Below the pieces are notes generated by a model that had not been told where the DNA came from, ran no database searches, and worked only from the letters and a program-made list of their open reading frames with translations. A DNA stretch of 64,000 nt, from positions 124,001-188,000 of the IMG/VR virus record IMGVR_UViG_3300025161_000004; one strand, 5' to 3'. Below are positions 527 to 16,304 of the stretch, piece after piece. A program made the translations under genes and the position numbers. The first letter of the stretch is position 1. The number at the start of each line of letters is the position of its first letter.

Positions 527-3490
527 TTAAAAACTAATATTTTTAGGATCATCAGTTCCATACTGTAAATCCTCATATTTTTTAGGTAATGCGTAAACAC
601 CTTTATCATAATATGTAGAATTTGCATAATAGTTAAATCCTATAGCATTTTGAAGTGCATCGATAGGTCCTCTTAATGACTGACCACCTATTACCTTCAT
701 AGACATTGAAATATCACAAATCATATACTGCATTCCCATTCCCTCAGGATTCGTATCCCAAGGTGCATCACTATAGTTAAAATTAATACTTTCTATAATT
801 ACTTTAGTATGAAAAAAGTCACCAATACGTAATATACATACTGGTTGACGACCAAATACAGAATTCTTACTACTTAATTGTTCACCATTAGAACTTATCA
901 TTCTCATGGCTGCGCCTTGGCGTACACATTGCTGTAAAAATGTTAATCTTTTATGAAAATCTTCTGGTGTTTGAGAATAAAAAACTGGTACAAATTTATT
1001 TTCACGTATATAATTAAACCCCCTAACTTTACCATCTTCAATTGTAAATGGATTAAATATACAATTTGATGGGTAGTTTTGTTCTGCTTTTATTCTAGAT
1101 ATTTCCTTATCCAAAGAATCTTTTGCTTCGATTAAATTATCAATTTCTTCTTGATTTATATTCGTTTGATTTTCGATAGTTTGTTGTTCTGTAACACCTT
1201 TGTTTCTAAATATAATTCTCACATATCTCGATTTTTTTGATTCAGGAAGATTTATACTGTCAGCAGATCTTGTACTTTCAGGTGCTAAAATACTACTATT
1301 AGGTACAATCGTAACAGTAGCACCTAGTTCTTCCATAGTTTTACCATTATTAGCTTCTTTGAATTTTTGTTCAAAGAAATTTTTTACAGCAATAGCTCTT
1401 CTTTCACTTAACTCTTTGTTATAATCAAATTCTTTTGATCTATCAATATACAACTTTGATGCATTACCTTCAAATATAATTTCAAGTGAAGCAATAGTAT
1501 CATCATCCTTTATGGATTGAATTCTATTATTAATTAATTCAACAAAATTACTATTCAAATTATCATTATTAGTGGCATATATATTTGTTGATTGATTACC
1601 TGTCTCATAATTAGCATCAATAATATCATTTTGTATTGTGGTATTTAGATTTGCATCTATTTTAGGTATGTCATTTGGGAAAAATATATTTATATCACTA
1701 TAATTAAAATCCTTATAATTTCTAATTACAGTTTTTTCTCTTAAAGTTTCAATTTGTTTAACTATATCATCTCTCTTTTTTACTTTATCTGATAAATTAT
1801 ATGTTTCTTTAGGTGTAGCTTCACCACCAAAAGCAAAAAAATCTGCAAATTCTTTATTTGTTGTAAATCCTTTTATTTGGGGTGGATAATCTATAATTAA
1901 CTTAAATGATAGAGTTGCAGATCTTTCAGAAAAACCATAAGTATACATTGGTTCATTTCTACCAATGAAATTTACTTGTTCCCACTTAGCAGTTGCTTGT
2001 TCTTCTAAATTAATATCATATGGTGCAAACCACATTAACCGACCATAATTCGGACCGATTTCGCACTTAGGTAATTGAATATTAGGCATACCTTCAGGTA
2101 ATCCAATCACATTACCTTCTTCATTTAATTGAAAAGCTAAATTCTCTATTGAGAACATAACTTTTTTATTAATCGCCTGAGATGATTTACTAATCATTGG
2201 GGTAATATTTGGTATTACCCTTTCATAAATAACTGAATTTGGATTACCATTATAAACATAGTTACCTTCAAATCTAATAGCCTTAGCGAAACGATTATAT
2301 TGATCAAGTACTGTATGCTGTCTTAATCCTTCATTTGGTGCATTTTCTCTATATCTTCTAACAATACTATTTTCAGGTACATTATATAATGCACTACCAT
2401 TAAATCCAACTAACTTACCTTTACCACTAATATCAGTCTTTCTGTAGAATTTCTTTCTGGTTTGATCAATTAAATTTCCACCATAAGCATTAAGTAATTG
2501 TGCTGTGTGTTTTAATAAACCTATTCTTGACCCAAATTTATTTATTGATTCACTTTCAACATTAGTATCTCTTGAATACTTCTGTACTTCTAATGTATCT
2601 TCACTTACATCTGTTTTACCCCAAATAATTTGATTATCGTCATCATAATGACCATCAGGTCTTCTTTCAAAATATTCAAATTCATCGGAAAAATTGTTAT
2701 TATCTGTTCTACCTAATGCAGCAATAAATTCATTATTGAGAGAAAAGTTTTTATCTAATGATCCTCCATATTCTTGATAAGCAGAATTATTTTTAGATAA
2801 TTCCATTCTTAATTCTGATTGAGATGCTCTTAATTTTGCATCAGCATCAGATTTATATGGAGCATCATCAGAAATATATCCTTCAATTTTATAATATGTA
2901 GATAATAATGGAAATCCTTGATTTTCTAATGATCCATATATTTGATTTGAAGAATTTCTATAAAAATTTCTACTTAAATTATTAGTTAATATTAATAACT
3001 GACCTTTACCTGTATTACGTATATAATCTATATCAGTACTTTGAGGTGTAAATGGTGATCTACGTAAGTTTGTACCGACTAATGTCTCAAGAATTCTACT
3101 TATATTTGATTGTTGTTCATCTCTTGTTATACGATAATCAATTTTACGTATAGCAAATTTTGTATTTGGATTTTTATCGAATAAATTACCTAAATTAAAC
3201 GTTGGTATTATTTCAGCAGAACCTTGAGATATTACTGTTTGAGATAATTGTTTTGCTAATTGAACTAATCCTATTTGAGCAATAGGAGTATTAGGCCCTA
3301 TGACTCTACCTAAAACTGTATTAGTAATATCAAATGATTTGAATGGTAATGCTATATTGGCTAATGCATTTACTGCATTTATGATTGCGGGATTATTTAT
3401 TTCATAAATGTTGTTGGGAGTATATAAGTTTTTAGCTAAAAGGGAATCTCTCAATTTAGCTGTTTCAATACTTGTTTCTAATCTTGACAT
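527..3490 (-). CDS. Large baseplate / tail-tube-initiator-like protein with inserted OmpA-like domain
   Basis: WEQVNFIGRNEPMYTYGFSERSATLSFKL (tube-initiator type) plus IIFEGNAS...YNKELSERRAIAVKNF...RYVRI (OmpA C-like); late motif upstream. Confidence 0.6.
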   Translation of the reverse strand: MSRLETSIETAKLRDSLLAKNLYTPNNIYEINNPAIINAVNALANIALPFKSFDITNTVLGRVIGPNTPIAQIGLVQLAKQLSQTVISQGSAEIIPTFNLGNLFDKNPNTKFAIRKIDYRITRDEQQSNISRILETLVGTNLRRSPFTPQSTDIDYIRNTGKGQLLILTNNLSRNFYRNSSNQIYGSLENQGFPLLSTYYKIEGYISDDAPYKSDADAKLRASQSELRMELSKNNSAYQEYGGSLDKNFSLNNEFIAALGRTDNNNFSDEFEYFERRPDGHYDDDNQIIWGKTDVSEDTLEVQKYSRDTNVESESINKFGSRIGLLKHTAQLLNAYGGNLIDQTRKKFYRKTDISGKGKLVGFNGSALYNVPENSIVRRYRENAPNEGLRQHTVLDQYNRFAKAIRFEGNYVYNGNPNSVIYERVIPNITPMISKSSQAINKKVMFSIENLAFQLNEEGNVIGLPEGMPNIQLPKCEIGPNYGRLMWFAPYDINLEEQATAKWEQVNFIGRNEPMYTYGFSERSATLSFKLIIDYPPQIKGFTTNKEFADFFAFGGEATPKETYNLSDKVKKRDDIVKQIETLREKTVIRNYKDFNYSDINIFFPNDIPKIDANLNTTIQNDIIDANYETGNQSTNIYATNNDNLNSNFVELINNRIQSIKDDDTIASLEIIFEGNASKLYIDRSKEFDYNKELSERRAIAVKNFFEQKFKEANNGKTMEELGATVTIVPNSSILAPESTRSADSINLPESKKSRYVRIIFRNKGVTEQQTIENQTNINQEEIDNLIEAKDSLDKEISRIKAEQNYPSNCIFNPFTIEDGKVRGFNYIRENKFVPVFYSQTPEDFHKRLTFLQQCVRQGAAMRMISSNGEQLSSKNSVFGRQPVCILRIGDFFHTKVIIESINFNYSDAPWDTNPEGMGMQYMICDISMSMKVIGGQSLRGPIDALQNAIGFNYYANSTYYDKGVYALPKKYEDLQYGTDDPKNISF

Positions 3491-3834: not shown

Positions 3835-3865
3835 GTGATTTAGAAAAAAAAATTAATATTTTTTT

Positions 3866-6433
3866 TTATCCTCTACCTTTTTGGGCAGCTACTGTGACAT
3901 CTACGATTTGTCTCGATAATGCTGATGCCATAGTTCTACCATCAACATTAATTATCGTATTTACATTTAAAGCCACTTCTTTTCTGTCAAATTCAACTTT
4001 TAATGGTTTACTAAATAAATCAGATAATTGAGATATAAAATTATTATTAGAGACATCTGCTTCAGCAATAGTTTTGATTGCTTTAGCTGTTTCAATAAAG
4101 TTAGTATTATCACCTGCCATAACTGCAGCAATACCACTAAAAGCTGTACCAACCTTTTCAAGTGTTCCACTATATAATGCCATAACTGTTAATGCCGCAG
4201 TTAATGCAGTAACACCAATTATACCTGTAGTAGATAATAATGCCAATGATCCTGCTATTCCAGCAAATGCTAATGTTACTGCTTTCATTTTTTCAATAGA
4301 TATATTCTGCATTAGTTTTGTCATTCCATCAGCCATAAACCCAATACCAGCTGCAGCAATACCTATACCAGCACCAATCATTAATATTGCACCTCCAAAA
4401 CCAAGCATCGGTAATGCAGCAGAACTAGCAGCAAAACCGAGAGCAATTACTGCAACAGACAATACACCAAATCCAATACCTAAATAACTTACAACATCTT
4501 TTAACAGTGCCATTTGATCAACATTTAATTCTTTTATACTTTCAGCTAATCCAGAAATACCTTTTGCGGCTAACCATATACCAGCACCTAAAGCAACAAA
4601 AGCAGCACCCATTGCCAATATTGTTTTAGGATTAATTTTTTTCATTTCATTAGTTACATTCTCACTAATACCGCCACTTGGCATTTGTTTTATATTACCA
4701 CCAGCGATATCTTTCATTTTTCCTTTTGCTTTTTCTTTTACTTTTTCTTTCGCTGCTTCACCAACAGTGCTTTGAATTGTGCCAGTAATTTCTTTTTTTG
4801 AAAAATAAGAACCAATCATTTGAGCACTTGTTTTTATTGCAGAAAATGATTTGGTTGTTAAATCCCAAAACTTTTTTCCAGCAACAAATACAATACTAAG
4901 TGCTGCAACCCATTTCATAGCTGATTTACCCCAATCAGGAATAGAATCAAATATATCATTAATACCTTTTAGAATCGGAGAAATTGTATCAAGAACTGCA
5001 TTTATACCTCTTAACGAAGGTAATAATGCAGCTTTCAATCCCTCAACTGTCGCTGCTAATTGTTCATTAAATGTTTGTGCTGCTTTAGCTCTTTCCTCTA
5101 AAGAGGTTTTTTGGGATTTTAATCCCTCGATTTCAGCTTTACTTAATTTAGATAATTCCTTTTTTTGATCACCAATCATTACATAAAACTTACCTGTACC
5201 CTTTTCGAATTGAGCCATACCTTCAATTACACTTCTATCTTCAGGATTAAGTATACCACTACTAGACATTTGCCTGCGCATTTCCTGTATCTTAGCCATT
5301 TGAATTGCTTGTTCAGCAAGTTCCTCTGTTGACATACCAAGTGCTTCGGCAGCTTTTGCTAATATATCTCTCGATTGAGGTGATGCTAAATCAAATTCAA
5401 AGCCCTCAGAAGTTTTACGTAATGTTGCCATTCCTTTGGTCATTTCATTAATTGTTTGCATGAATTTTTTGGGATCATTACGTGATTCATATAGCATTTT
5501 AAATGGATCGGTTTTAGCGAATTCACCACCTAATACTTGTAATTTTGATGCTAAATCAACCGCCCCCTCAAGAGTTCTGGCTTTATCTGCAGCATTTAAA
5601 GTGCTTTCCATATTAATTTTAAATTTCTCAGAATACATTGCCATATCAGACATACCAGCAACCCCTGTTTTAAATCCATATGTTGCTAATCTCTTAAAAT
5701 TAGCATTCATAGATTTTAATATTTTATTACTATTAAGACCAAATTTTTCGGATGAATCAACAATATTTTGAACAGTTTTAGCAGTATCCTCTGCATTAGT
5801 ACCAACTAATTCAAATTTACCAATTAATTCTCCAGCACCTTGAACACCTAATGCAGTTCCTTTTGCTATTCTTGTTACAGCAATTGCAGCTTCTTTATAG
5901 AGTAAAGTTTGTCTACCAGTTAATTCAGAATAAGTTGTTTGAATTTCCGATAGTTCTTGGAGATTAGAACCAAGATATGCTAATTCTACTGCCGAATCTT
6001 CAAAATTTTTGCGTAATATATTTGCTTTATTACCTGATAAGCCTAAATTAAGTATTGTTTGTCTAATTGCCTTATCAGATTGCATTAGATATGTAAAATA
6101 GTTTCTAGCACTATTAACTATACCTTCCCTAATATTTTTTAAATTTTCTAATCCTTGTTTTTGTTTTTCTATTTCTTTTCTTTGTTGTCCATAAATTTTT
6201 AATAGATTTTCATTAGCCTTTAAAGTGTTTTCATCACCTTCAAGAATTTTAGATCTTAAATTTTGAATTTTTTTATTTATTTCACCGTAATCTTTATTAA
6301 GATCATTTAATCTTCTTTGTGTACTAAAAATACCTTTTTGTGTATCAAATATACTTAATAATGTTCTTTCTTCACCCTCAAGAAGCTGATTAATTTTTTC
6401 TTGTAGTTTTAATCTTTCATTATCGATTGCCAT
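3866..6433 (-). CDS. Tail tape measure protein
   Basis: 855 aa, Ala/Gly/Lys-rich helical, hydrophobic C-terminal segments, directly downstream of the tail chaperone genes. Confidence 0.85.
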   Translation of the reverse strand: MAIDNERLKLQEKINQLLEGEERTLLSIFDTQKGIFSTQRRLNDLNKDYGEINKKIQNLRSKILEGDENTLKANENLLKIYGQQRKEIEKQKQGLENLKNIREGIVNSARNYFTYLMQSDKAIRQTILNLGLSGNKANILRKNFEDSAVELAYLGSNLQELSEIQTTYSELTGRQTLLYKEAAIAVTRIAKGTALGVQGAGELIGKFELVGTNAEDTAKTVQNIVDSSEKFGLNSNKILKSMNANFKRLATYGFKTGVAGMSDMAMYSEKFKINMESTLNAADKARTLEGAVDLASKLQVLGGEFAKTDPFKMLYESRNDPKKFMQTINEMTKGMATLRKTSEGFEFDLASPQSRDILAKAAEALGMSTEELAEQAIQMAKIQEMRRQMSSSGILNPEDRSVIEGMAQFEKGTGKFYVMIGDQKKELSKLSKAEIEGLKSQKTSLEERAKAAQTFNEQLAATVEGLKAALLPSLRGINAVLDTISPILKGINDIFDSIPDWGKSAMKWVAALSIVFVAGKKFWDLTTKSFSAIKTSAQMIGSYFSKKEITGTIQSTVGEAAKEKVKEKAKGKMKDIAGGNIKQMPSGGISENVTNEMKKINPKTILAMGAAFVALGAGIWLAAKGISGLAESIKELNVDQMALLKDVVSYLGIGFGVLSVAVIALGFAASSAALPMLGFGGAILMIGAGIGIAAAGIGFMADGMTKLMQNISIEKMKAVTLAFAGIAGSLALLSTTGIIGVTALTAALTVMALYSGTLEKVGTAFSGIAAVMAGDNTNFIETAKAIKTIAEADVSNNNFISQLSDLFSKPLKVEFDRKEVALNVNTIINVDGRTMASALSRQIVDVTVAAQKGRG

Positions 6434-6454
6434 ATTAATTGCAAATTATTTCTA

Positions 6455-6462
6455 ATAAATAC
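6455..6462 (-). promoter_or_regulatory. Late promoter motif GTATTTAT
   Basis: About 22 nt upstream of the tape measure ATG, directly after a terminator. Confidence 0.7.
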
Positions 6463-6472
6463 ACAATAAGCA

Positions 6473-6498
6473 AAAACCCTTCGAATTCGAAGGGTTTT
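6473..6498 (-). terminator. Rho-independent terminator (perfect 26-bp palindrome AAAACCCTTCGAATTCGAAGGGTTTT)
   Basis: Hairpin plus T-run directly after the stop of the gp51-like gene. Confidence 0.8.
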
Positions 6499-6500
6499 AT

Positions 6501-6695
6501 TTATCTCTTCCTTATACCAGAAACCGATAGCGTTTTATTTTTTCTGGCTTGTTTTTCAAAAATTTCTTTGGTTTCTTTAGCTTCTTTCTCAAGTAGATGA
6601 AGATAATATCTTCTTTTCCATACTGGAATACTTTCAATGTATTCGGAAGAAAATCTACCATGTTTAGTAAGCAGGTAAATTTCTTGAATTACCAT
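6501..6695 (-). CDS. Baseplate hub assembly / tail chaperone, gp51-like (possible -1 frameshift extension of upstream gene)
   Basis: IQEIYLLTKHGRFSSEYIESIPVWKRRYYL pattern; frame stays open upstream through a T9 slippery run. Confidence 0.7.
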   Translation of the reverse strand: MVIQEIYLLTKHGRFSSEYIESIPVWKRRYYLHLLEKEAKETKEIFEKQARKNKTLSVSGIRKR

Positions 6696-6712
6696 TTTTT
6701 TATATTCTCCAG

Positions 6713-7663
6713 CTAAAGATTTGGGAAAAAAAAATCTACTCCCATTACTATGGGTGCTTTAAATGTATTACCTGCAGGTGATGTAAATTGATAGTTCATA
6801 TCTACACCAGGGCTAACATCTAATATTTTTTTTCTTAGAGTTAATGAATCCAAAGCTGGCATAGCATCAACAAATCTACTAATATACATTTTATCTCTTT
6901 TACCATCTATCTCGGTTATTTGTGTTTTTAATCTAAGTGTATTTAATTCATTATATTCCTGATTATATGCTTCTTTCATTGCGTCAGCTTTTTTTATTAC
7001 TTCATCAATTTCTCTTGAATTTAATAATCTAAATTTTACAATCTTTTTTCTCATGGGTAATTCTATTGTAAACTCACCATTTTCATCAGGAAATTCGGTT
7101 ATCTCTTTATTTTTTAATTTAGTTAAATCAATAGTTGCCTTAAATTGTTTTCCAGTAAATGGATCGGTGACATTCACATCATAATCCTTACCATATGATG
7201 ATGCTCTTAGAAAAATTAGAATAGCATCCTTATCTCCAACTAATAGATCGCCCACATTAACGTTAGGTGTCTTAATTTTGCGTTTAAGAATCACATCAAG
7301 TACAGTACCATTTTCTATAAGTGCTGGGGTTGTTAAAATATCTTCATCTTTCGATGTAAGATATTCAACCATTACTTCATCTAATCTATTTTTATAAAAT
7401 AAACCCTTTGATGGTAATTTAACAGTATCAACACCAACAATAAGATCGGGATCATTTTCAACACTTATTCTTTTTATATGTTCATCAAAGTTATTATCGA
7501 GTTTAGGAATTTGAGTTTGTGCTGTACTGAATTGATTTTCAGGAATTCCCTTTTGGGATAATGTTACGTTTTCGGTTTTAGTTTTATATGCTGCATTAGC
7601 TTCTTCTTTTTTTGCGTAATAATTTCTAAGCGATTCATTTAGTAATGACGATTCTTGATTCAT
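6713..7663 (-). CDS. Baseplate hub assembly / tail chaperone, T4 gp26-like
   Basis: VKLPSKGLFY...EYLTSKDEDILT...DKDAILIFLRASSYG...GVDFFFP pattern. Confidence 0.75.
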   Translation of the reverse strand: MNQESSLLNESLRNYYAKKEEANAAYKTKTENVTLSQKGIPENQFSTAQTQIPKLDNNFDEHIKRISVENDPDLIVGVDTVKLPSKGLFYKNRLDEVMVEYLTSKDEDILTTPALIENGTVLDVILKRKIKTPNVNVGDLLVGDKDAILIFLRASSYGKDYDVNVTDPFTGKQFKATIDLTKLKNKEITEFPDENGEFTIELPMRKKIVKFRLLNSREIDEVIKKADAMKEAYNQEYNELNTLRLKTQITEIDGKRDKMYISRFVDAMPALDSLTLRKKILDVSPGVDMNYQFTSPAGNTFKAPIVMGVDFFFPNL

Positions 7664-7707
7664 ATCTCAGATTTATAAATTATTATAAAATATTATTATA
7701 TGTACCT

Positions 7708-7794: not shown

Positions 7795-8583
7795 ATGACT
7801 AAAAAGAGAAGGGATCAGTCCTTTACCCTAACACAGGAAGAAGTTAATAAACAAGCCAAAGAGTTAATAAATAATATTATTATTTCAGATGTTAAAATAC
7901 ATGCTAAAAATGAAAGTCAAAAGAAATTAATAAAGACAATTAATGAAAAAGAAATAACAATATGTGCAGGTCCACCAGGGTGTGGTAAAACCATAGTTTC
8001 ATTAGCTATGGCTTTGTCTTTAATAAAGAAAGATGATAATAATTATAGAAAAATATATTTGATAAAATCAGTTACAACATTAAAGGGTGAAGAAGTTGGT
8101 TTCTTAAAAGGAGATTTAAGTGAAAAGATTGAACCATTTATGTGGAGTTTTATTTTGAATGTTGATAAGTTAATTAGTGAACATGAAATTAAATCATTGT
8201 TTGATAGTGATATTATTAGACCGTTTCCATTAGCATATATTAGAGGTACTACCCTTGATAATGCAATTATTATAATTGATGAGGCTCAAAATATAACAAT
8301 TGATAATGCCAGAACAATCTTAACTCGTATTGGGCAAAATAGTAAAATGATATTATTAGGTGACACTAATCAAATTGATTTAAAGAATAAAAATGAAAGT
8401 TCGTTAGATATTTTAATTAAAATGTTTGATAACAGTGATAAAATTGGTGTGGTAAAAATGGATACTTCAGATACAAGCATACGTAATCCTATTATCAATT
8501 ACATTGAAGATACTTATAATAAGTACTTCCAAGAACTAGAAAAGGAAGGAAAATCAGCTAAACGTAATTTATTATATGGATAA
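7795..8583 (+). CDS. phoH: PhoH-like ATPase
   Basis: GPPGCGKT Walker A, PLAYIRGTTLDNAIIIIDEAQN, LTRIG...LLGDTNQID. Confidence 0.95.
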   Translation: MTKKRRDQSFTLTQEEVNKQAKELINNIIISDVKIHAKNESQKKLIKTINEKEITICAGPPGCGKTIVSLAMALSLIKKDDNNYRKIYLIKSVTTLKGEEVGFLKGDLSEKIEPFMWSFILNVDKLISEHEIKSLFDSDIIRPFPLAYIRGTTLDNAIIIIDEAQNITIDNARTILTRIGQNSKMILLGDTNQIDLKNKNESSLDILIKMFDNSDKIGVVKMDTSDTSIRNPIINYIEDTYNKYFQELEKEGKSAKRNLLYG

Positions 8584-8866
8584 TTTAATATTGGTATATT
8601 ACATTGGAACAGCAATGATTCCTGAGAATCAGATTGAATCTTATGTTAAACAAATTATTGATAGGATAAAATCTGAATCTAAAATGGTGGCAGAAATTAT
8701 TGTAATTCCCACAAAACAAGTTGATACAAGAATCGAGTGTATAAATCCAAAGTATATTACTGAACCAGAATTAATCAGAGAACATAGACTTAAAATGGAT
8801 ATGTTACATGAATATTTAAATCATTATATTAATGAATTAAAAGAAAGAAAAAAAGATGAGCAATAA
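8576..8866 (+). CDS. Hypothetical protein
   Basis: Overlaps phoH stop in an operon-like arrangement. Confidence 0.75.
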   Translation: MDNLILVYYIGTAMIPENQIESYVKQIIDRIKSESKMVAEIIVIPTKQVDTRIECINPKYITEPELIREHRLKMDMLHEYLNHYINELKERKKDEQ

Positions 8867-9305
8867 TGAATTACCAGAAGACAATACTGAAATGATTCTG
8901 AAGAAAATTTATGAACGTTTATCAGATAAGTCAGTAAAAAAGGAATTATACGATGCTATCGAAAAGATAGAAAAAATTTATGGTTATCCTATTGATATTA
9001 CATTAATAATTAATGATAATCGTAGCGATCTTGGTGTGAATACATACAATGAAGACTCATATAATTATGGTCAACAATTGGATTATGATTATATACTAAA
9101 AAAACCTCAAGATGGTACGATGAAATTATCAGAATTTATTAAGTTCTTATCTGATGAAGATCCTGAATTAAAAATATGTATTGACCCAATATATCTAAAA
9201 CATGGTATTAATGATATAGGCAATGTTCTATTGACTACTTTTAATAATAAAGTGATAATAGTCCCTAAACCAACAGAAGTAAATGAAGCCAATAATAGGA
9301 ATTGA
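8856..9305 (+). CDS. Hypothetical protein
   Basis: Overlapping ORF in the same operon. Confidence 0.7.
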   Translation: MSNNELPEDNTEMILKKIYERLSDKSVKKELYDAIEKIEKIYGYPIDITLIINDNRSDLGVNTYNEDSYNYGQQLDYDYILKKPQDGTMKLSEFIKFLSDEDPELKICIDPIYLKHGINDIGNVLLTTFNNKVIIVPKPTEVNEANNRN

Positions 9306-9999
9306 TATAAATGAAATAATTAGAGGTAGATGGCAAAAATTTGATCAATGCTATGTATCAGAATATGGTTTAGATGGTGTAATTGAACCGTTCGATACAT
9401 TTGATTTTAGAAATCATTATAAGTTTTATGATAAAGTAGAAACTATAAATTTTCTAAATGAAGAATTACCAGATAATATTTCACCTATAGAATATCAGGT
9501 TAACCCTGAAACAGGTGAAGCACCAGTAGACGCATTTGCATTTAAAAAAGAAACTCAAAATATTAGTGCGGATTTAGCATATAAGAAATTTTTATACGAG
9601 GATTACGTATTTGAAATTTTTGGTGCTGCACCATTGCTTTATAAGAATGTGGATCTTGATTTCGAAAAATTTTATAAAATGTACATGAATAAGTATGATA
9701 TTAGAGTTATCTCAAGAGAGAATTTTTTAAGTATTCCTGCAACGCTTTTCTTTTTAAGTAAAATAAGGTCAAGATATATGAATTATCATTTTTTTGAAGA
9801 TAATGAAACAATTTGGAGTGTGATGGATTGTATTATAACAACTGATCCAGAACTAATTAAATCAAAACCTGAGGGTAAAAAAGTAATTAAGTTTATAAGG
9901 CAATGGAATGAACAATTATCTGGAGATATGAATGTAACCAGTATAGTAGATATAATTGAAAATAAAGATTTTGATAAATTATTTGAAGTACAAGAATAA
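9283..9999 (+). CDS. HAD-fold 5'(3')-deoxyribonucleotidase-like protein
   Basis: N-terminal IIGIDINEII resembles HAD motif I but has DxN/E instead of DxD; the C-terminal ..QWNE.. pattern is typical of the NT5C-like family. Confidence 0.5.
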   Translation: MKPIIGIDINEIIRGRWQKFDQCYVSEYGLDGVIEPFDTFDFRNHYKFYDKVETINFLNEELPDNISPIEYQVNPETGEAPVDAFAFKKETQNISADLAYKKFLYEDYVFEIFGAAPLLYKNVDLDFEKFYKMYMNKYDIRVISRENFLSIPATLFFLSKIRSRYMNYHFFEDNETIWSVMDCIITTDPELIKSKPEGKKVIKFIRQWNEQLSGDMNVTSIVDIIENKDFDKLFEVQE

Positions 10000-10017
10000 A
10001 ACCAAACTAAAAGTAAA

Positions 10018-11169
10018 ATGAATCAGAGAGAAGAACAATTAAAACAAGTAGAACTTGAAAGAATCGAAAAATTAACAAATGCTCTTGACAAATTAAAGGC
10101 AAAAAAAAGTAAATTCATGTTTTTTGTTGCTAATACTTTACAACCATCAGCAGCAATTCACGAAATCTATTTTCATGCTACTTTAGTTAAGAAAATGGGT
10201 TATGAATCAATAATGTTAACTGATGTTGAGGATTATGTTATACCAACATATTTGGATAGCGAGTTAGTGGAATTAGAGCATATTTCTATGGCTAAAGCAC
10301 AGTTAACTGTAGGTCCTGAGGATGTGTTGATTATACCAGAAATATTCTCAAATGTCATGGAACAAACTAAAAATCTACCATGCATTAGAGTAGCATTTAT
10401 ACAGTCAATTGATTTTGCTTTAAATGCATTAATTCCTGCAATGGATTGGAGTTCGTTTGGTATTAAAAAGGTACTTACTACCAGTGAACAATTGAAATCA
10501 TTAATTATTGAATATTTTGGAGAAAATAAATTTGAAATTAGTACCTATACTATAGGTATTCCAGATTATTTTGCACCATCAAAAGAACCGAAAAGACCAG
10601 TTATTTCTATAGTAGGTAGAAATGCAAATGAGATAACTAAAATAGTAAAACTTTTCTATTTAAGATATCCACATTATAGCTGGATCGGTTTTGATACTAT
10701 GCAAACAGAATCAAAACCACCACAACTAATGAGAAGAAAGGATTTTGCCGAAAAACTTTCAAAAAATTTTGCTGCGGTATGGATTGATCGTATTTCTAAC
10801 TTCGGTACTTTTCCTCTTGAATGTATGAAATGTGGTACAATTCCAGTGGCAATTATTCCAGATATTACACCTGAATATTTAATTGATCGAGAAAAGAATG
10901 ATTATGTTCAGAATTGTGGTATATGGACTAATGATTTTTATGCGTTACCAAAATTACTTGGTGATCTCATTACTAAGTTTTTGGATGATAATATTTCAGA
11001 TGAAGTATATACTTCAATGCGAGAAATTGCATCCAAATATAGCATTGAAAAATCTGAATCTGATTTATCAACATATTATAAATCATTGTTAGATGAAAGA
11101 ATCAGAGTTATTGAATCTGAACTTGAAAGATTAAAATCTAAATCAGAAGCAGTTAATACATCTATTTAA
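10018..11169 (+). CDS. Glycosyltransferase, GT-B fold
   Basis: VLIIPEIF, FGTFPLECMKCGTIPV donor-binding signature. Confidence 0.8.
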   Translation: MNQREEQLKQVELERIEKLTNALDKLKAKKSKFMFFVANTLQPSAAIHEIYFHATLVKKMGYESIMLTDVEDYVIPTYLDSELVELEHISMAKAQLTVGPEDVLIIPEIFSNVMEQTKNLPCIRVAFIQSIDFALNALIPAMDWSSFGIKKVLTTSEQLKSLIIEYFGENKFEISTYTIGIPDYFAPSKEPKRPVISIVGRNANEITKIVKLFYLRYPHYSWIGFDTMQTESKPPQLMRRKDFAEKLSKNFAAVWIDRISNFGTFPLECMKCGTIPVAIIPDITPEYLIDREKNDYVQNCGIWTNDFYALPKLLGDLITKFLDDNISDEVYTSMREIASKYSIEKSESDLSTYYKSLLDERIRVIESELERLKSKSEAVNTSI

Positions 11170-11191
11170 TAAAAATTAATAAATTAAACAT

Positions 11192-12016
11192 ATGAACATG
11201 GAATTATCTGTAATTATACCAATTCATGAATATAATGAAACAGTTGAAAAATATCTAAAAATAGCTCTTGATTCCATAAAAAATCAAGAAGATATTAACA
11301 ATGAATTCCCTGATGTTGTTGTAGTTGCAGCATCATCAGCAATAAAGGAAAACCTCGATAAATTAGTACATTCTTTTGGATTACCGTTCACCATTCAAAT
11401 ATTAGTGAATGATCAAGGAAACACATCATTTCAAGGACAAGTTAATTTTGGTGTATCAAAAATTAATACTAAATATTTTACAATCCTTGAATTTGATGAT
11501 GAATTTAGTGTTAGATATTTAAAAAATTATAAACTATATACATCAGTATATCCAAATGTTGATTTGTTTATGCCCATAATTGTTGAGGTTAATGAACAAA
11601 ATCAACCACTTAAATTAACAAACGAACCAGTATGGTCGAAGCAATTTGTTGGTGAAAATGGAGTAATAGGTTATTTAAATTCAAGAGTGTTATCACAATA
11701 TAGTGATTTTAAAATTTCAGGTTCTATTTTTAAAACAGAAGAATATAAAACTAATGGGATGTTAAAGACTAAGATAGAATTAACATTTAATTATGAATTA
11801 CTTCTTAGATATGTAAATATGGGTAGTAAAATTTTTGTAATTCCTAAAACAATTTATAAACATGTTGCAACAAGACCAGATAGTTTATTTGCTAAATATG
11901 CTGTTACTATGACATTAAAAGAGAGAAAATTTTGGTTTGACGTTGCTAAGAAAGAAAGTAATTTTAGTACTGATAGAGAAATTAATAAATCAGAATTATC
12001 GATATCAGTAGTATAA
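11192..12016 (+). CDS. Glycosyltransferase family 2 (GT-A fold)
   Basis: LSVIIPIH...ALDSI...YFTILEFDDE (DxD-like)...YELLLR. Confidence 0.85.
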   Translation: MNMELSVIIPIHEYNETVEKYLKIALDSIKNQEDINNEFPDVVVVAASSAIKENLDKLVHSFGLPFTIQILVNDQGNTSFQGQVNFGVSKINTKYFTILEFDDEFSVRYLKNYKLYTSVYPNVDLFMPIIVEVNEQNQPLKLTNEPVWSKQFVGENGVIGYLNSRVLSQYSDFKISGSIFKTEEYKTNGMLKTKIELTFNYELLLRYVNMGSKIFVIPKTIYKHVATRPDSLFAKYAVTMTLKERKFWFDVAKKESNFSTDREINKSELSISVV

Positions 12017-12045
12017 AATAACATATATTATGATATGCATTATGG

Positions 12046-12870
12046 GTGATGAGAAAGAAAAAGGCTATTAAAAATGTAATTGTAGAGACATCAAGACCAA
12101 CACCTATAGAAAATACGGACGATACAATTAATAAAAATTATTTTGGTGAGAGAGAAGAGAAGGCATTAATTGACTATATCAATAGTGATTCTCCAGATGA
12201 AAGACAATTCATTTATAATACTATTCTAAAAAAGCCATTTCAAAAAATGGTTGAATCAATTTTAAGAAAATATCCTATTCATATAGGTAACTATGATATA
12301 AAAGAAATCGAAATGAATGGGTTGTCTCATCTTATTGAGAATATGGTTAAATTTAACCCAAATAAACTTAATAAAATGGGTCAAAAGGTGAGAGCATTTA
12401 GTTATTGTCAAACTATTGTTCGAAATTATTTTAAAGATCATGGTAGAAAAAGTTATAAAGAGAAAAAAACAATCCTTAGTTTTGATAACTATTCAGAAGA
12501 AATCCTTCATAGAGAGGAATATCTATATGAAATAGATAAAAATGAACATGATGAGTTACAATTATTGATCAATAATGTAATAGCTAAAATAAGAGAAAAA
12601 ATTGATACTGATAAGTCATTAAAAAAAAATGAAATTATTGTTGGAGATGCAATAGTGAATGTATTAGAAAATTGGCATGTATTGTTTTTAGAAGAGACCA
12701 AAGAAGGTAAATTCAACAAAAAAATTACAAATAACTATCAAAAAAATAAGATACTTTTATTTTTAAAAGAGCAAACGGGTTTATCCACAAAAGAAATACG
12801 ATTATCGATGAAATCATTCAAGGATATTTATTTTATTGAAAAAGCCATGTTCTATGGTAATGATGATTAA
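12046..12870 (+). CDS. Phage sigma factor, T4 gp55-like (late transcription)
   Basis: Sigma region-2-like segment KFNPNK...RAFSYCQTIVRNYF. Confidence 0.6.
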   Translation: MMRKKKAIKNVIVETSRPTPIENTDDTINKNYFGEREEKALIDYINSDSPDERQFIYNTILKKPFQKMVESILRKYPIHIGNYDIKEIEMNGLSHLIENMVKFNPNKLNKMGQKVRAFSYCQTIVRNYFKDHGRKSYKEKKTILSFDNYSEEILHREEYLYEIDKNEHDELQLLINNVIAKIREKIDTDKSLKKNEIIVGDAIVNVLENWHVLFLEETKEGKFNKKITNNYQKNKILLFLKEQTGLSTKEIRLSMKSFKDIYFIEKAMFYGNDD

Positions 12871-12885
12871 TTTTTTTTGTAGTCT

Positions 12886-12893
12886 GTATTTAT
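12886..12893 (+). promoter_or_regulatory. Late promoter motif GTATTTAT
   Basis: Between two + strand genes, upstream of the spike operon. Confidence 0.65.
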
Positions 12894-12909
12894 TATAAAT
12901 TTGTTGGTT

Positions 12910-13278
12910 ATGCCTAGAATTAAAAGAAAACAAATTAAATTTGATGAGGAAAGTGCGAACAATTTACTTCAGGAAATTTATAATGACTCGCATAATATTA
13001 GAGCAAAAATTACTATGCTTTTTAGAAAATGGGAAAAATATATTGACGACGAATCTAAAATTGCAGTATTAGGCGAACAAATAGTGAAACTTATTCAAGC
13101 AGAGGCAAAAAATCAAGACCAAAAAATACTTCTTTTAAAGTTCCTAAAAGAAGTCGCATATAAAGACGTTTCTAATAAAGAAAATGGGCAGGATGATTCT
13201 ACTAGTGGTGTAATATCAAATGAGAGAAGAAATGCGCTTTTAAATTTGGTAAAAAATGAATTAGAAGCTAAAAAATAA
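12910..13278 (+). CDS. Hypothetical protein (late operon)
   Basis: ATG at 12910 preferred over the TTG start; helical. Confidence 0.7.
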   Translation: MPRIKRKQIKFDEESANNLLQEIYNDSHNIRAKITMLFRKWEKYIDDESKIAVLGEQIVKLIQAEAKNQDQKILLLKFLKEVAYKDVSNKENGQDDSTSGVISNERRNALLNLVKNELEAKK

Positions 13279-14591
13279 TGGGTTTAATTGATGATAAAAG
13301 AAGTATATTCACCGAAGTAGGTGCTTACATTTCAGTTCAAAAAAATATAAAAAGAACTGATAATCTTAATACTTTTTCGTCTGTAAATAATAAAAAAGAA
13401 CCCATTCCTTTTATGTTGGATTTGATTACTGTCACATCAGGTAGTGAGGCAGTTAAAGGAGTATTCGGTAAAATAATGACCAAATACATTAGAGAAGTGA
13501 CACCAACATTAAAAGATGAACTAAAAAAACTTAATACTCTTCATAATTCAGATACTCCTGTATCTGGTACATTTACTACAACAGGATTTAGAACATCAGC
13601 AAAAAATATTGATGTTTCCGGTAAATTTAATAATGACCCATCTAATGGTGTTGGTAAATTATTATATGGGGATAATGTGAATGATTTTGATAGAAAATCA
13701 TATGATGCTATAGCTAATCCAAATACCGATATAGCATATGGATCAAACATGACCATAAGATACGATGAACTTACAGATGAATTTGTTTATAAAGGTACTA
13801 ATCCATCAATGACAAAAGGAGACTTTATAAACAACTATATTGATAACTTAACTCTTATTGATGAAAAAGAGTTGAATAGTAAGATTCTTGATTCTATTTA
13901 TGGTAATATTAGTTCTAAATCAAAAGATAATACGCTAAACACCGTATTTGAACTTGAGAAATATAATAAAGCTCTTGAAAAGTTACTTGCTGAGGAAGAA
14001 AATATTGATGTATTAGATAGTGAATTAGAAGAAATATTAAAAATTGCTGAACAAAGATATAAAGGTAAAGCAGAAATTCAAATTGGATGTTGTGATTGTA
14101 TTAATGCATCTCTTGATTTAAATGATACTGAAAATTTAATTAGCGTTATTACAGGTAGTAGTGATCCTACATTAGTGGGTGATTTATATGAAAGAACTAT
14201 AGATCAAAGTGTGACTGATCCTTCACAACAAGAATTAAAAAATATAAATAAGGCTACCATTAAAGACGGATTTTTCAAGAGATTAATTAACAACATTGTA
14301 AGAACTATAATGGAAGCCATTACATCAACTCCACAAATAAGAGCATTACAATTAATAGTTAGCGGATTTAAAAATAATGGGGCGGCAACATTGGATTCTC
14401 CAATAAACGAATTAAAGAAAAACAGAAACACTGCAGATTGTTTAGCTAAAACAGTAAAAATATCAATTAATAAATTTATATTTGATTTAGTAAAAAAAGA
14501 ATTGCTTAAAATTGTTTCTGCGGTTTCAGTTGTTATTTTAAGAGAAAAAATAAATCAATTTATAAGAATATTAAGAAGTTTAATTAGTTAA
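13278..14591 (+). CDS. Hypothetical, probably structural protein
   Basis: 437-aa ORF translationally coupled within the late operon that ends in the spike gene. Confidence 0.7.
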   Translation: MGLIDDKRSIFTEVGAYISVQKNIKRTDNLNTFSSVNNKKEPIPFMLDLITVTSGSEAVKGVFGKIMTKYIREVTPTLKDELKKLNTLHNSDTPVSGTFTTTGFRTSAKNIDVSGKFNNDPSNGVGKLLYGDNVNDFDRKSYDAIANPNTDIAYGSNMTIRYDELTDEFVYKGTNPSMTKGDFINNYIDNLTLIDEKELNSKILDSIYGNISSKSKDNTLNTVFELEKYNKALEKLLAEEENIDVLDSELEEILKIAEQRYKGKAEIQIGCCDCINASLDLNDTENLISVITGSSDPTLVGDLYERTIDQSVTDPSQQELKNINKATIKDGFFKRLINNIVRTIMEAITSTPQIRALQLIVSGFKNNGAATLDSPINELKKNRNTADCLAKTVKISINKFIFDLVKKELLKIVSAVSVVILREKINQFIRILRSLIS

Positions 14592-14595
14592 TATT

Positions 14596-14757
14596 ATGAT
14601 AGCAGATAATAAAGTAAAAAACAAATCCTTTGTGGGTGTCTTTTTAATGGATGGCACTGATGATGGAGTAAAATTAGCACTAACAAAAAAACCTAATTTA
14701 ATTAGACGAATTTTAATTAGGATTTTATTAGGATGGGTTTGGTTTGATGTAAAATAA
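14596..14757 (+). CDS. Small hypothetical protein (53 aa)
   Basis: Not in track: MIADNKVKNKSFVGVFLMDGTDDGVKLALTKKPNLIRRILIRILLGWVWFDVK fills the gap exactly. Confidence 0.6.
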   Translation: MIADNKVKNKSFVGVFLMDGTDDGVKLALTKKPNLIRRILIRILLGWVWFDVK

Positions 14758-14785
14758 TAATATTAATAATAATATTATTAATATT

Positions 14786-15193
14786 ATGGCAGTAGATTAT
14801 AGTAACATATCATCGATAATTTCTGGATTTCAGAAAATACTAAAACTACAAACAGCTGGCGCACCAACAGTGTTACCTGCACCAATTCTTTTTGTTGGTG
14901 TAAGAAGGAAAAGTGGTCTATCACCAACAAAAATTGCAAGTAGAATTATTTCTAGAAAAAGTGAAGCTGGTGTACCAATTGGAGCACTGCCAAGTGGTGG
15001 TGTAAGCCCAGATGAAATCATGGAAAGAATTAGAATAGAAGAAATTGTTCGTGGATTTCACGAAGATGCAATTGTAATTGTTGGTATTCCACCCGGTACG
15101 ACAGTGAGTGCTGCAGGTGCTTCACCAGCAGGACCTGTTACTGTGTTTGGCTCTACAATAACATTTACTACTGCATATGGTCAAATACAATAA
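14786..15193 (+). CDS. Hypothetical Gly/Pro/Ala-rich baseplate-associated protein
   Basis: Lies upstream of the spike gene; beta-strand-like C-terminus. Confidence 0.65.
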   Translation: MAVDYSNISSIISGFQKILKLQTAGAPTVLPAPILFVGVRRKSGLSPTKIASRIISRKSEAGVPIGALPSGGVSPDEIMERIRIEEIVRGFHEDAIVIVGIPPGTTVSAAGASPAGPVTVFGSTITFTTAYGQIQ

Positions 15194-15195
15194 TT

Positions 15196-15390
15196 ATGTT
15201 TGAGAATTATACTGATACTGAAATAATAAAAAAAATAGATGATACTGTTAAAGATCACGAACATAAAAAACAAAAAATAATTGATCTAACATATCAGATA
15301 GATACCCTTATAAGTGAATTAGATAAATTAGAAGAACAGTATGTTGCATTAATAGCTGAATTAAATAGAAGAAAAGATGGCATACGATAG
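15196..15390 (+). CDS. Small coiled-coil hypothetical protein
   Basis: Heptad-like pattern; overlaps the next gene. Confidence 0.6.
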   Translation: MFENYTDTEIIKKIDDTVKDHEHKKQKIIDLTYQIDTLISELDKLEEQYVALIAELNRRKDGIR

Positions 15391-16255
15391 AAAGTTTTTA
15401 ATTACCAGTGATCCTTATAGAAGGGATACTAATAAAGACACAACTATAAGAAATGTATACTATGGTGAAGTTGTGAGTATTGATGACCCAACTGAAGGTG
15501 GTAGAATAAAAGTTAGAATATCTGGTATTGACGATAAAAAAACAAATGATAGACTACCTTGGGCATATCCATTATTACCTAAATTTTTTCATGTTTATCC
15601 TAAAGTTGGTGAGGCAGTAAGAATTATTTTAGAAGACGTAAGATATCCAGAGAAGGGTCGTCAATGGATGGGTAGTGTCATATCACAACCACAAACAATA
15701 TATTTTGATGCTTTTGCAAGTGCATTTTCTACAACAGATTTAGCTAGAAATGCTCCAGATAAAGCACCATCAACGTTTCCAAACGCTATTGGAGTGTTTC
15801 CAAAAATTGATGATATTGCATTAATTGGTAGAGACAATACTGATATTATTTTGAGAAATAAAGAAATAGAATTACGTGCAGGCAAGCATGAAGTAAATAA
15901 TGTTCTTAGTTTAAATAAAAAAAACCCGTCATCAATTAAATTAACAATCGAACCAGATGGTTCACAATCTAGTGCTATGATGATGGCAGATAAAATTGCG
16001 ATTATATCACACGATGGTGTACCTAAATTCAAATCTTATGATGTTAATTCTGAAGAAAGAAATAAAATATTCACTCAAGGTCATCCAATGACAAGAGGTG
16101 ATGTTTTGGTTGAAGCACTAGAAATACTAAGAAAAGCAATAATTAATCATATTCACGGTTATAGTGGATTACCTGCAGATAAATCTGGTTCGATTATTGA
16201 TCTTGAAAAGATTAATTTCGAAGGTATTCTTCAAAGAAATATTGTAATTAACTAA
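15377..16255 (+). CDS. Baseplate central spike (gp5/gpV-type OB-fold)
   Basis: GEVVSIDDPTEGGRIKVRI...PWAYP...PKVGEAV OB-fold; C-terminal HIH metal-binding tip motif. Confidence 0.8.
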   Translation: MAYDRKFLITSDPYRRDTNKDTTIRNVYYGEVVSIDDPTEGGRIKVRISGIDDKKTNDRLPWAYPLLPKFFHVYPKVGEAVRIILEDVRYPEKGRQWMGSVISQPQTIYFDAFASAFSTTDLARNAPDKAPSTFPNAIGVFPKIDDIALIGRDNTDIILRNKEIELRAGKHEVNNVLSLNKKNPSSIKLTIEPDGSQSSAMMMADKIAIISHDGVPKFKSYDVNSEERNKIFTQGHPMTRGDVLVEALEILRKAIINHIHGYSGLPADKSGSIIDLEKINFEGILQRNIVIN

Positions 16256-16261
16256 TATTAC

Positions 16262-16292
16262 TTGATTTTTTTCTTAGATATGTATAATATTG
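16262..16292 (+). promoter_or_regulatory. Host-type promoter variant TTG-N20-TAATATTG
   Basis: One mismatch to TAnnTTTG; upstream of the nuclease gene. Confidence 0.4.
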
Positions 16293-16304
16293 CATTTCTA
16301 ATGC

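Follow-up and report, generated by a model that had tools for sequence, protein, structure and literature searches.

We propose that a gp26-like gene and the small gp51-like ORF behind it, found in a jumbo-phage lineage represented by IMG/VR virus record IMGVR_UViG_3300025161_000004, constitute one recoded pair that specifies two proteins with a common N-terminus. Recoding of one kind or another is very likely. The slippage itself is inferred, in the absence of protein or RNA data. We regard a −1 slip of the ribosome as somewhat more likely than not, both the ribosomal nature of the event and its efficiency being inferences. The DNA analysed, hereafter the window, is a 64,000-nt stretch of this record (positions 124,001 to 188,000). 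A frameshift in the tail assembly chaperone genes ahead of the tape measure gene is among the most conserved recoding events in phages, and the T4 group has not been known to follow this rule. The original prediction, made from the sequence alone, had linked gp26 and gp51 to the G/GT mechanism of phage lambda. This link is supported and generalizes, on the strength of the gp51 architecture, the chaperone-like fold and the tube-to-tape-measure position in relatives, while the slip as such remains an inference.

The putative shift site and its surroundings

The 3′ end of ORF1 reads GAT TTT TTT TTC CCA AAT CTT TAG, with a run of nine Ts (T9) within the last eight codons and the stop three codons past two overlapping slippery heptamers (Table 1). 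ORF2 lies in the −1 frame relative to ORF1. This frame is open from the T9 onward and reads FFF-PKSLAGEYKK-MVIQEIY without a stop. The end of the gp26-like gene, the T9, both heptamers and the open −1 frame leading into the gp51-like ORF had all been claimed in the original prediction, and every one of these claims held exactly. The linker between the run and ORF2 spans the ORF1 stop and a 17-nt ‘intergenic’ gap, and as it has no start codon it can be translated only by ribosomes that enter in the −1 frame. The ATG of ORF2 is preceded by an A-rich leader and, approximately 11 nt upstream, by a purine-rich GGAG-like element. The conceptual fusion contains two diagnostic peptides, APIVMGVDFFFPK and SLAGEYK, and the short form has a C-terminus ending in FFFPNL. 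At 29% G+C, the window includes 12 A/T runs that are nine bases long and 40 that are eight; with a dozen runs of nine present, the T9 by itself is unremarkable. What goes beyond chance is that it falls within the last eight codons of ORF1, that it is in phase and that relatives conserve it.

Table 1. Window coordinates of the putative recoded pair and adjoining features
Feature	Position	Strand	Remarks
ORF1, gp26-like gene	7663-6713	minus	316 aa; TAG stop at 6715-6713; ‘G-like’ short product
Putative shift site, GAT TTT TTT TTC	6725-6736	minus	T9 run + C; T9 at 6734-6726
Slippery heptamers	T TTT TTT 6734-6728; T TTT TTC 6731-6725	minus	in phase, X XXY YYZ, overlapping
Linker	6696-6725	minus	ten codons, CCC AAA TCT TTA GCT GGA GAA TAT AAA AAA = PKSLAGEYKK
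ORF2, gp51 C-terminal-domain homologue	6695-6501	minus	64 aa + stop (6503-6501); ATG at 6695; ‘T-like’ extension
Predicted frameshift product	6504-7663	minus	387 aa; ‘GT-like’ long product; ORF1 codons 1-312, −1 slip, linker, ORF2
ORF3, probable tape measure protein	3866-6433	minus	855 aa; identity from position and composition
Palindromic terminator-like hairpin	6473-6498		between ORF2 and next gene; stem of 11 bp and loop of 4 nt, flanked by T tracts; function untested

A stimulatory RNA structure was sought 5–9 nt downstream of the run and no conserved one was found. The consensus fold (−4.75 kcal/mol) shows next to no covariation (term 0.02), and a z of −1.6 was obtained for the single-sequence fold; the sole long stem of the consensus pairs the run with the A7 that precedes the ATG, all of its pairs being invariant. 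Upstream of the run a GGGAG motif occurs in the window only. We dismissed a terminator-like hairpin lying just 5′ of the run (6754-6741) as a possible stimulator of slippage, since it is not conserved among relatives.

ORF2 ends at 6501 and the next gene, ORF3, starts at 6433. We regard ORF3 as a probable tape measure protein, an identity inferred from position and composition and not shown by homology. The N-terminal part of the protein is coiled-coil-like, and Gly/Ala-rich hydrophobic repeats are found near the C-terminus. Searches assigned it to no Pfam or PHROG family and returned no tblastn match; BLASTP gave a weak match (E 2e-4) to the protein annotated as tape measure in Flavobacterium phage immuto. 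ORF3 occupies the position of the annotated tape measures of immuto and Listeria phage LIS04, and the gene order in these two phages and in Microcystis phage Mel-JY01 is sheath, tube, gp26-like gene, small ORF, tape measure. The placement of the pair upstream of the tape measure gene, as originally predicted, rests on this assignment. The description of the phage as T4-like is loose, because its nearest cultured relatives are Mel-JY01 and the Flavobacterium immuto phages.

Identity and conservation of the two ORFs

ORF1 matches Pfam PF12322 (T4_baseplate; E 1.6e-9, 38.2 bits versus a cut-off of 24.5) and also phrog_150. It aligns end to end with T4 gp26, and the FF at the position of the shift site is kept even in that protein. 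An AF2 model (pLDDT 85.9) predicts two tandem domains resembling tail assembly chaperones after a disordered/helical N-terminus. The only PDB matches with Z ≥ 5 are 3fgx (Z 6.2, 90 residues aligned), 3klu (5.7, 84) and 2ob9 (5.3, 84), with 5ir0 at rank 6; all four are solved tail assembly chaperones (PMC9603447, PMC12987554). The gp26-like part of a second model, built for a relative in which the two frames are naturally fused (L018), gives the same PDB matches, and the two independent models agree. The fold Z-scores, 5.2–6.6, fall below the level that the tool deems safe. These chaperone matches come from an alignment-based structure search; Foldseek yielded no match below E 0.2 against the PDB, and the ORF1 profile had no meaningful match among PDB sequences. 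The resemblance of the gp26-like part to the tail assembly chaperone fold is a model-based prediction supported by modest Z-scores.

ORF2 is a homologue of the short C-terminal domain of gp51. It matches phrog_634 (E 0.003, profile positions 72–119 of 121), the only family matched by several members of the ORF2 alignment (5/30, best E 7e-6), and hhalign against the marine T4-like gp51C gives a probability of 95% and an E of 3e-8. The match to the single T4 gp51 sequence is weak (E 0.09), yet it falls at the expected place, residues 223–247. In the model of the natural fusion the domain appears as a helix-loop-helix. The identities originally given to the two ORFs both held: ORF1 as gp26-like through PF12322 and the end-to-end alignment, ORF2 as gp51-like through phrog_634 and the profile–profile match.

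Residues 1–201 of T4 gp51 also match PF12322 (E 3.9e-52), and the C-terminal domain follows. It was this Pfam match that decided the architecture of gp51, as a small gp26 alignment compared with T4 gp51 by hhalign gave no useful result. The predicted fusion is collinear with T4 gp51 and was aligned also with the marine fusions and with the natural fusion. In T4, 26 and 51 are separate, divergently transcribed paralogous genes, which bears out the statement in the original prediction that T4 encodes the two proteins separately. The genome of the window and four marine T4-likes carry one PF12322 gene each; with a single such gene, the long form can arise in these phages only via recoding.

The close relatives of the window comprise 18 loci with 12 distinct junctions, whose ORF1 identity ranges from 49 to 86%. 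At every locus ORF2 is in the −1 frame and GAT TTT TTT TTC CC is unchanged. The original prediction had named loss of the T-run or of the −1 phase, together with detection of separate products only, as grounds for refutation; both run and phase are conserved. Synonymous sites elsewhere in ORF1 are saturated among the 12 distinct relatives. The ORF1 alignment contains 77 degenerate codon columns that are invariant in amino acid; just 10 are invariant in codon, and four of these are the codons of the shift site. The TTC at the site is present in 12/12 relatives, though TTC makes up only 20% of Phe codons, and the third base of the GAT before the run is likewise fixed in all 12.

Past the ORF1 stop, the linker evolves as coding sequence and does so in the −1 frame only. 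In that frame third positions vary at 6/6 and first positions at 1/5, and pairwise comparison of codons gives 82 synonymous and 70 non-synonymous differences, compared with 0:149 and 11:145 in the other two frames. In distant relatives the linker peptide has a counterpart in the FF-GL..EY[KR] segment, with which it aligns. Four of the 12 relatives have a −1 frame stop directly 5′ of the run, and the frame must therefore be entered at or after the run. An ATG opens ORF2 in 11 of the 12; in one relative (L017) ATA replaces it, and the natural fusion is in frame through one extra base.

In marine T4-like phages (P-SSM2, S-PM2, KVP40, HTVC008M) g26 and g51 are adjacent and overlapping. The marine T4-like loci in IMG/VR (79/79) have NNT TTT TTC, invariant and in phase, ahead of a g51 in the −1 frame. 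Whichever amino acid it encodes (S, N, A, D or G), the codon before the heptamer is always NNT. At least four marine loci are without an ATG close to where g51 begins. For P-SSM2 the tryptic junction peptide predicted from the fusion ends in ...EGLQSFFR. The common UUC codon in the A site and the strict X XXY YYZ phase favour tandem tRNA slippage.

A more distant clade, with 73 distinct junctions (95 loci), has the homologous ORF in the +1 frame, beginning 17–26 nt before the ORF1 stop. An in-phase T7 run is present at 71/73 of the junctions; one member (L071) has a T9 in another phase. Of the 71 junctions with the in-phase T7, the ORF2 frame lacks an ATG in 54 and lacks GTG and TTG as well in 31. 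Homology starts upstream of the ORF1 stop in all 95 loci. Over the three clades the gene is split in 173 of the 174 loci examined. Tail chaperone frameshifts are reported to behave typically in this way, the arrangement being kept while the direction of the shift changes (Xu, Hendrix and Duda 2004).

Proposed ribosomal slippage and its rivals

Could the same fusion come about at the level of transcription? In this explanation RNA polymerase stutters on the A9 template and one U is added in some of the transcripts. In bacteria the polymerase is known to slip on A or T runs of at least nine, as with the T9 of Shigella mxiE and the A9 of Thermus dnaX; as in those genes, the homopolymer of nine here is in a coding region and an added base reaches the downstream frame. 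With its nine bases the run could equally provoke polymerase slippage and so yield the same protein. It has this length in 12/12 distinct relatives, and the fixed third base of GAT exceeds the need of one heptamer. The distant clade requires the opposite change, one base fewer, on its T7, and the T9 of L071 is in another phase; a length-driven mechanism tolerates both. The lack of a detectable stimulatory RNA structure downstream of the run also speaks for the polymerase. Against it stands the marine clade, which has just T6 + C in a strict X XXY YYZ phase behind a fixed NNT, a pattern that fits tRNA re-pairing; six Ts are too few for efficient polymerase slippage. The run of the window includes the in-phase T TTT TTC of that clade. 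The site differs from mxiE and dnaX in being also a phased ribosomal slippery heptamer, with homologous sites in relatives that are too short for the polymerase to slip. We consider transcriptional slippage unlikely; the two kinds of slippage may act together here.

It may also be argued that nothing is recoded: the two ORFs would be ordinary adjacent genes, ORF2 being translated from its own ATG, perhaps by termination coupling, and the run merely encoding a conserved Phe-Phe-Phe. The ATG at 6695 is indeed kept in nearly all close relatives, with its A-rich leader and GGAG-like element, public annotation consistently treats g26 and g51 as two genes, and the FF is conserved as far as T4 gp26. 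However, the codon choice within the run is fixed beyond the need of the protein, and the start-less linker bears a coding signature in the ORF2 frame. One close relative has lost the ATG and another is fused in frame, the ATG is likewise missing from at least four marine loci, and in the +1 clade most junctions lack it and homology always precedes the ORF1 stop. In T4 gp51, moreover, the functional architecture is seen to be the fused one. We judge this explanation very unlikely. An assembly artefact, in which the true gene would be an in-frame T10 fusion that lost one T, is all but excluded. In its favour, a single additional T would suffice to bring the two frames together, homopolymer runs invite errors and L018 is an in-frame fusion; the contigs from two independent metagenome assemblies (hot spring and soil), however, cross the run without an indel, so the T9 is not a homopolymer error of assembly. 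Exactly nine Ts are also found in 12 distinct relatives from different samples, and the split is near-universal in the loci examined. The evidence on run length consists of assembled DNA contigs only, and these are homogeneous in length.

A G/GT-like model and its counterparts

What would a ribosomal −1 slip mean for tail assembly? Most ribosomes would terminate at the TAG of ORF1, yielding a product of 316 aa with two chaperone-like domains. A minority would slip by −1 with tRNA-Phe on the U UUU UUU and U UUU UUC heptamers of the T9, read PKSLAGEYKK and continue into ORF2, giving a 387-aa fusion with a C-terminal helix-loop-helix domain. By analogy with G/GT, both forms would coat the neighbouring tape measure protein, the additional domain of the long form would dock the complex onto the growing hub or tube, and neither form would be retained in the virion; these binding partners are inferred. 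T4 would make the same two proteins from separate genes, gp26 corresponding to the short form and gp51 to the long one. It is possible that ORF2 is also made alone from its own ATG.

A bolder reading, towards which the evidence leans only slightly, is that gp26/gp51 are the G/GT equivalent of the whole T4-type contractile-tail lineage. Outside T4 the long form would be made only through an unannotated programmed frameshift, and T4 would have escaped through gene duplication. The frameshifting group would take in the marine T4-likes, the jumbo lineage described here, immuto-like Flavobacterium and Microcystis phages, huge phages and myoviruses of Gram-positive hosts such as LIS04, with −1 shifts on T6C or T9C and +1 shifts on T7. 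On such a reading the enigmatic ‘catalytic’ gp51 of T4 may simply be the GT form, and gp26 the G form.

We found no description of a 26/51 frameshift in the full-text literature searched, which did not extend to subscription papers. In 392 records g26 and g51 appear as two separate genes, none of them marked as slippage, and in LIS04 and Streptococcus phage vB_SagM-GXN1 the second ORF is unannotated. The roles of T4 gp26 and of gp51, the latter required for hub assembly yet missing from the particle, have been obscure for decades. If our model is correct, the chaperone frameshift rule extends to T4-type tails, the job of gp26/gp51 is to coat the tape measure gp29, the gp51 tail docking gp29 to the hub or tube, and hundreds of cyanophage, pelagiphage and jumbo-phage genomes hold a mis-annotated gene pair. 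Homologous U-run sites of six, seven and nine that switch between −1 and +1 would also be useful for separating ribosomal from polymerase slippage.

Lambda G/GT is one of the closest counterparts. The tail assembly chaperone frameshift is reportedly conserved in long-tailed phages (Xu, Hendrix and Duda 2004), and P2 E/E+E′ and Mu gp41 are further cases. The pair described here shares with G/GT two overlapping ORFs just 5′ of the (here probable) tape measure gene, a slippery site among the final codons of the upstream ORF, a long product (here predicted) bearing the N-terminus of the short one, and an arrangement that is conserved while the sequence and even the shift direction vary. A tail-assembly-chaperone-like fold is predicted for the upstream ORF. 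In T4 the products are chaperones that do not occur in virions (PMC3004832). By contrast, the short product has 316 aa and two chaperone-like domains, as opposed to approximately 140 aa and one in lambda. In place of G GGA AAG there is a run of U, T9C in the window and T6C in the marine T4-likes, ORF2 has its own ATG in most close relatives, and the family is PF12322, annotated ‘baseplate hub’, no lambda-type chaperone sequence family having been matched.

T4 gp26, known as baseplate hub, and gp51, known as hub assembly catalyst, are listed as hub assembly chaperones, gp51 not being present in the particle (PMC3004832); ORF1 is homologous to gp26 over its full length and the predicted fusion has the architecture of gp51, but where T4 has two paralogous genes the genome of the window has a single PF12322 gene and, in our model, recoding. 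The short gp51 of cyanophages and KVP40 is a further counterpart. Sullivan et al. 2010 (PMC3037559) noted that it is without 200 residues of T4 gp51, and the passages of that study bearing on it do not mention a frameshift. These genes of approximately 60 codons correspond to the C-terminal fifth of T4 gp51, directly follow g26, lie in the −1 frame behind T TTT TTC and are homologous to ORF2. Their run is a T6 with the stop one codon after the heptamer, whereas in the lineage of the window the run is a T9, the linker is longer, and ORF1, of 316 aa, is additionally extended at its N-terminus.

A -1 junction between the gp26-like and gp51-like genes

The original prediction placed a slippery T9 run at the junction of the gp26-like gene (ORF1) and a small gp51-like frame (ORF2), and this observation is confirmed in the sequence. 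ORF1 ends GAT TTT TTT TTC CCA AAT CTT TAG; ORF2 lies in the -1 frame relative to ORF1, and that frame contains no stop from the run onwards and translates as FFF PKSLAGEYKK MVIQEIY (see table). By itself the run means little, because the window, at 29% G+C, holds 12 A/T runs of nine. It is spanned without indel by contigs of two independent metagenome studies. DNA nearly identical to window 6300-7700 is present in sediment-, hot spring- and soil-labelled assemblies from different studies, and the phage or close strains of it are therefore widespread.

Positions of the junction, its neighbours and the corresponding sites in relatives
Feature	Record	Position	Strand	Remark
ORF1, gp26-like	window	7663-6713	minus	316 aa
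T9 run	window	6734-6726	minus	inside last codons of ORF1
ORF2, gp51-like	window	ATG at 6695, stop 6503-6501	minus	64 aa
ORF3	window	6433-3866	minus	855 aa, next after ORF2
Sheath gene	window	18082-20793		10 kb from gp26-like gene
Tube gene	window	17465-17953		10 kb from gp26-like gene
Block of ~10 kb	window	7795-17105	plus	between tube and gp26-like genes
PhoH	window	7795-8583	plus	in block
gp5-like fragment	window	15377-16255	plus	in block
Exonuclease	window	16305-17105	plus	in block
Hairpin CCCAT-AGTA-ATGGG	window	6741-6754	minus	six bases 5' of T9 run
U9CCC pairing	window	6695-6735	minus	
Palindromic hairpin	window	6473-6498		between ORF2 and ORF3
A9 (3844-3852) and T9 (3859-3867) runs	window	3844-3867		at stop of ORF3
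Start codon replaced	L017, close relative	3389-3440		
Natural fusion	L018, close relative (IMG/VR contig 3300049491_000850)	2327-3457		377 aa
T9 then CCC	L071, +1 clade	1861-1883		
g26/g51 junction	L102, Pelagibacter phage HTVC008M	16372-16578		
gp51C-like +1 ORF	L189, Listeria phage LIS04	4190-4441		
gp51C-like +1 ORF	L190, Streptococcus phage vB_SagM-GXN1	4210-4500		

Scans of IMG/VR provided 18 close-relative loci, representing 12 distinct junctions, with ORF1 49-86% identical to that of the window. All of them place ORF2 in the -1 frame and carry GAT TTT TTT TTC CC unchanged, and the expected conservation of run and phase thus held at all 12 junctions. Only 10 of 77 degenerate, amino-acid-invariant ORF1 columns keep one codon across the 12 sequences, and four of these ten are the D-F-F-F codons of the shift site; the third Phe codon is TTC in 12/12, though TTC accounts for only 20% of Phe codons. 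In the linker between the ORF1 stop and the ATG, -1-frame third positions are variable (6/6) and first positions rarely so (1/5), and pairwise codon changes, synonymous to non-synonymous, stand at 82:70 in that frame as against 0:149 and 11:145 in the other two. With no start codon in the linker, only ribosomes emerging from ORF1 can have left this coding signature. Four close relatives carry a -1-frame stop immediately 5' of the run, and entry is therefore limited to the run or the next five codons. In one relative (L017) ATA replaces the ORF2 ATG and the T9C site is kept. In another (L018, ORF1 63% identical) the site reads GAG TTT TTT TTG CCC, and this one extra base makes the gp26-like part and the gp51 C-terminal domain (gp51C) a single in-frame ORF, with the former ORF1 stop persisting in the +1 frame.

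Proposed ribosomal slippage and its rivals

How might the second frame be reached? The best-supported reading, which we hold with moderate confidence, is a programmed -1 ribosomal slip at the T9C site; the slippage itself is inferred from sequence alone. The tRNA-Phe would slip on U UUU UUU / U UUU UUC, yielding products of 316 and 387 aa with a common N-terminus. Slippage of RNA polymerase on the T9 run is possible, as a serious rival or a partner. In its favour, all nine T's are fixed in the clade of the window, distant relatives have +1 sites on T7, and no stimulatory RNA structure for a ribosomal slip was supported at the shift site by a consensus fold of relatives or a single-sequence fold. 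Against it, UUC is fixed and the marine clade shares the same strict heptamer phase, which is why we favour the ribosome. Six T's are generally too few for polymerase slippage. It is possible, alongside slippage, that ORF2 also starts independently at its own ATG.

Terminator-like hairpins can stimulate polymerase slippage, and a 5-bp hairpin upstream of the run scored as terminator-like; it is not conserved in relatives and was rejected as a stimulator. Separately, a downstream GGnGA...A7 segment just ahead of the ORF2 ATG can base-pair with the U9CCC of the shift site. Because none of these pairs varies, covariation neither supports nor refutes the pairing, which could conceivably keep the ORF2 start hidden until translation of ORF1.

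Marine and distant relatives

In the marine T4-like phages P-SSM2, S-PM2, KVP40 and HTVC008M a PF12322 gene, the only one per genome, adjoins and overlaps a phrog_634 gene. Gene 26 ends AGT TTT TTC GTA TAA in P-SSM2 (S-PM2 is similar), GAT TTT TTC GTA TAA in KVP40 and AGT TTT TTT TAA in HTVC008M, with g51 in the -1 frame. The HTVC008M g26 stop immediately follows the heptamer, and no ATG precedes the conserved domain in the g51 frame of this phage. In further IMG/VR loci g51 follows an invariant in-phase NNT TTT TTC in the -1 frame (79/79); the preceding codon is AGT, AAT, GCT, TCT, GAT or GGT, so that the final T is constant and the amino acid is not. At least four of these loci lack an ATG near the g51 start. 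RefSeq gives P-SSM2 gp26 and gp51 as separate genes, as do cyanophage, pelagiphage and Methylophilales phage records among 392 matches. Cyanophage gp51 is ~20% of the length of T4 gp51, the first ~200 residues being missing (Sullivan et al. 2010, PMC3037559).

A more distant set comprises 76 further loci with 73 distinct junctions and ORF1 identities of 30-46%. Here the ORF2 homologue occupies the +1 frame, and its homology begins 17-26 nt 5' of the ORF1 stop. A T7 run beginning at a codon boundary (TTT TTT TGG CC or TTT TTT TAC CC) marks 71/73 junctions; the ORF2 frame lacks ATG in 54 of these 71, and ATG, GTG and TTG alike in 31. The window's linker upstream of the ORF2 Met aligns with the FF-GL..EY[KR] peptide of these relatives. 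Listeria phage LIS04 and Streptococcus phage vB_SagM-GXN1 have the same +1 arrangement, the unannotated second ORF lying in an annotation gap (in LIS04, between the 'baseplate hub' and tape measure genes) and overlapping the end of the 'baseplate hub' gene; the GXN1 junction (GAA TTC TTT CGT) has no T run. One +1 locus (L071) has T9 then CCC as in the window's lineage, but its run starts at a codon boundary and its ORF2 is +1; this locus may bridge the two designs as an intermediate.

Gene identities and comparison with lambda and T4

ORF1 matches PF12322 (T4_baseplate; 38.2 bits, cut-off 24.5) and phrog_150, and its alignment with T4 gp26 extends to the very C-terminus. The match of ORF2 to phrog_634, to which the gp51 'hub assembly catalyst' belongs, is confined to the final 50 profile positions, and the profile of the ORF2 family hits the short marine T4-like gp51 (probability 95%, E 3e-8). 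The 855-aa ORF has no match in Pfam or PHROG searches; its position, coiled-coil and Gly/Ala-rich hydrophobic repeats, and a weak similarity to the protein annotated as tape measure in Flavobacterium phage immuto make it a likely tape measure protein, without family homology. One PF12322 gene and one gp51C domain are present in the genome record, which is 246.8 kb long and an estimated 79% complete. The gene order sheath, tube, gp26-like gene, small ORF, tape measure is shared by Mel-JY01, immuto and LIS04, whereas in the window a block of plus-strand genes separates tube from gp26-like gene. Ahead of the probable tape measure gene stands a perfectly palindromic hairpin with an 11-bp stem and a 4-nt loop, flanked on either side by T tracts; it is terminator-like in both directions and, judging by sequence only, might attenuate read-through. 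At the far end of that gene, A9 and T9 runs six bases apart could pair as an A/U hairpin.

Modelled with AlphaFold (pLDDT 84.7, pTM 0.71), the natural fusion has an alpha/beta part and, after it, a helix-loop-helix tail. A Foldseek search of the PDB with this model returned no match; an exhaustive aligner gave only four for the alpha/beta part, 3fgx (Z 6.6), 3klu (5.7), 2ob9 (5.2) and 5ir0 (4.3), all tail assembly chaperones (PMC9603447; PMC12987554). With the window ORF1 model (pLDDT 85.9) the only matches at Z>=5 were 3fgx (6.2, residues 58-166), 3klu (5.7, 194-286) and 2ob9 (5.3, 69-161), 5ir0 standing at rank 6. The same four proteins among 48,161 chains thus come back in both models, with modest Z-scores, and the gp26-like part resembles two tandem chaperone domains. 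Predicted viral structures of this fold come from large myoviruses, and every one carries a baseplate hub or hub assembly label.

The proposal that ties gp26/gp51 to the lambda G/GT mechanism is thus supported, and is widened beyond the window's lineage. This kind of feature is already known; the gp26/gp51 family had not been linked to it in the literature searched. Searchable literature and database annotation yielded neither a frameshift in the family nor any reading of the two T4 proteins as a G/GT pair encoded by unlinked genes. By analogy with lambda G/GT, and without binding data, both forms would sit on the tape measure and the extra domain would dock to hub or tube. In T4, genes 26 and 51 are divergent, so that fusion is impossible; a T4 review lists both products as hub assembly chaperones and reports gp51 as absent from the particle (PMC3004832). 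T4 gp51 residues 1-201 match the full PF12322 profile (E 3.9e-52), and BLASTP detects similarity between gp26 and gp51 (E 2e-6). The conceptual fusions from the window, marine phages and +1 clade, like the natural fusion, align collinearly with T4 gp51; in T4 the short and long forms are therefore encoded by two paralogous genes. We incline, with some reserve, to regard T4 gp26/gp51 as an unlinked G/GT pair.
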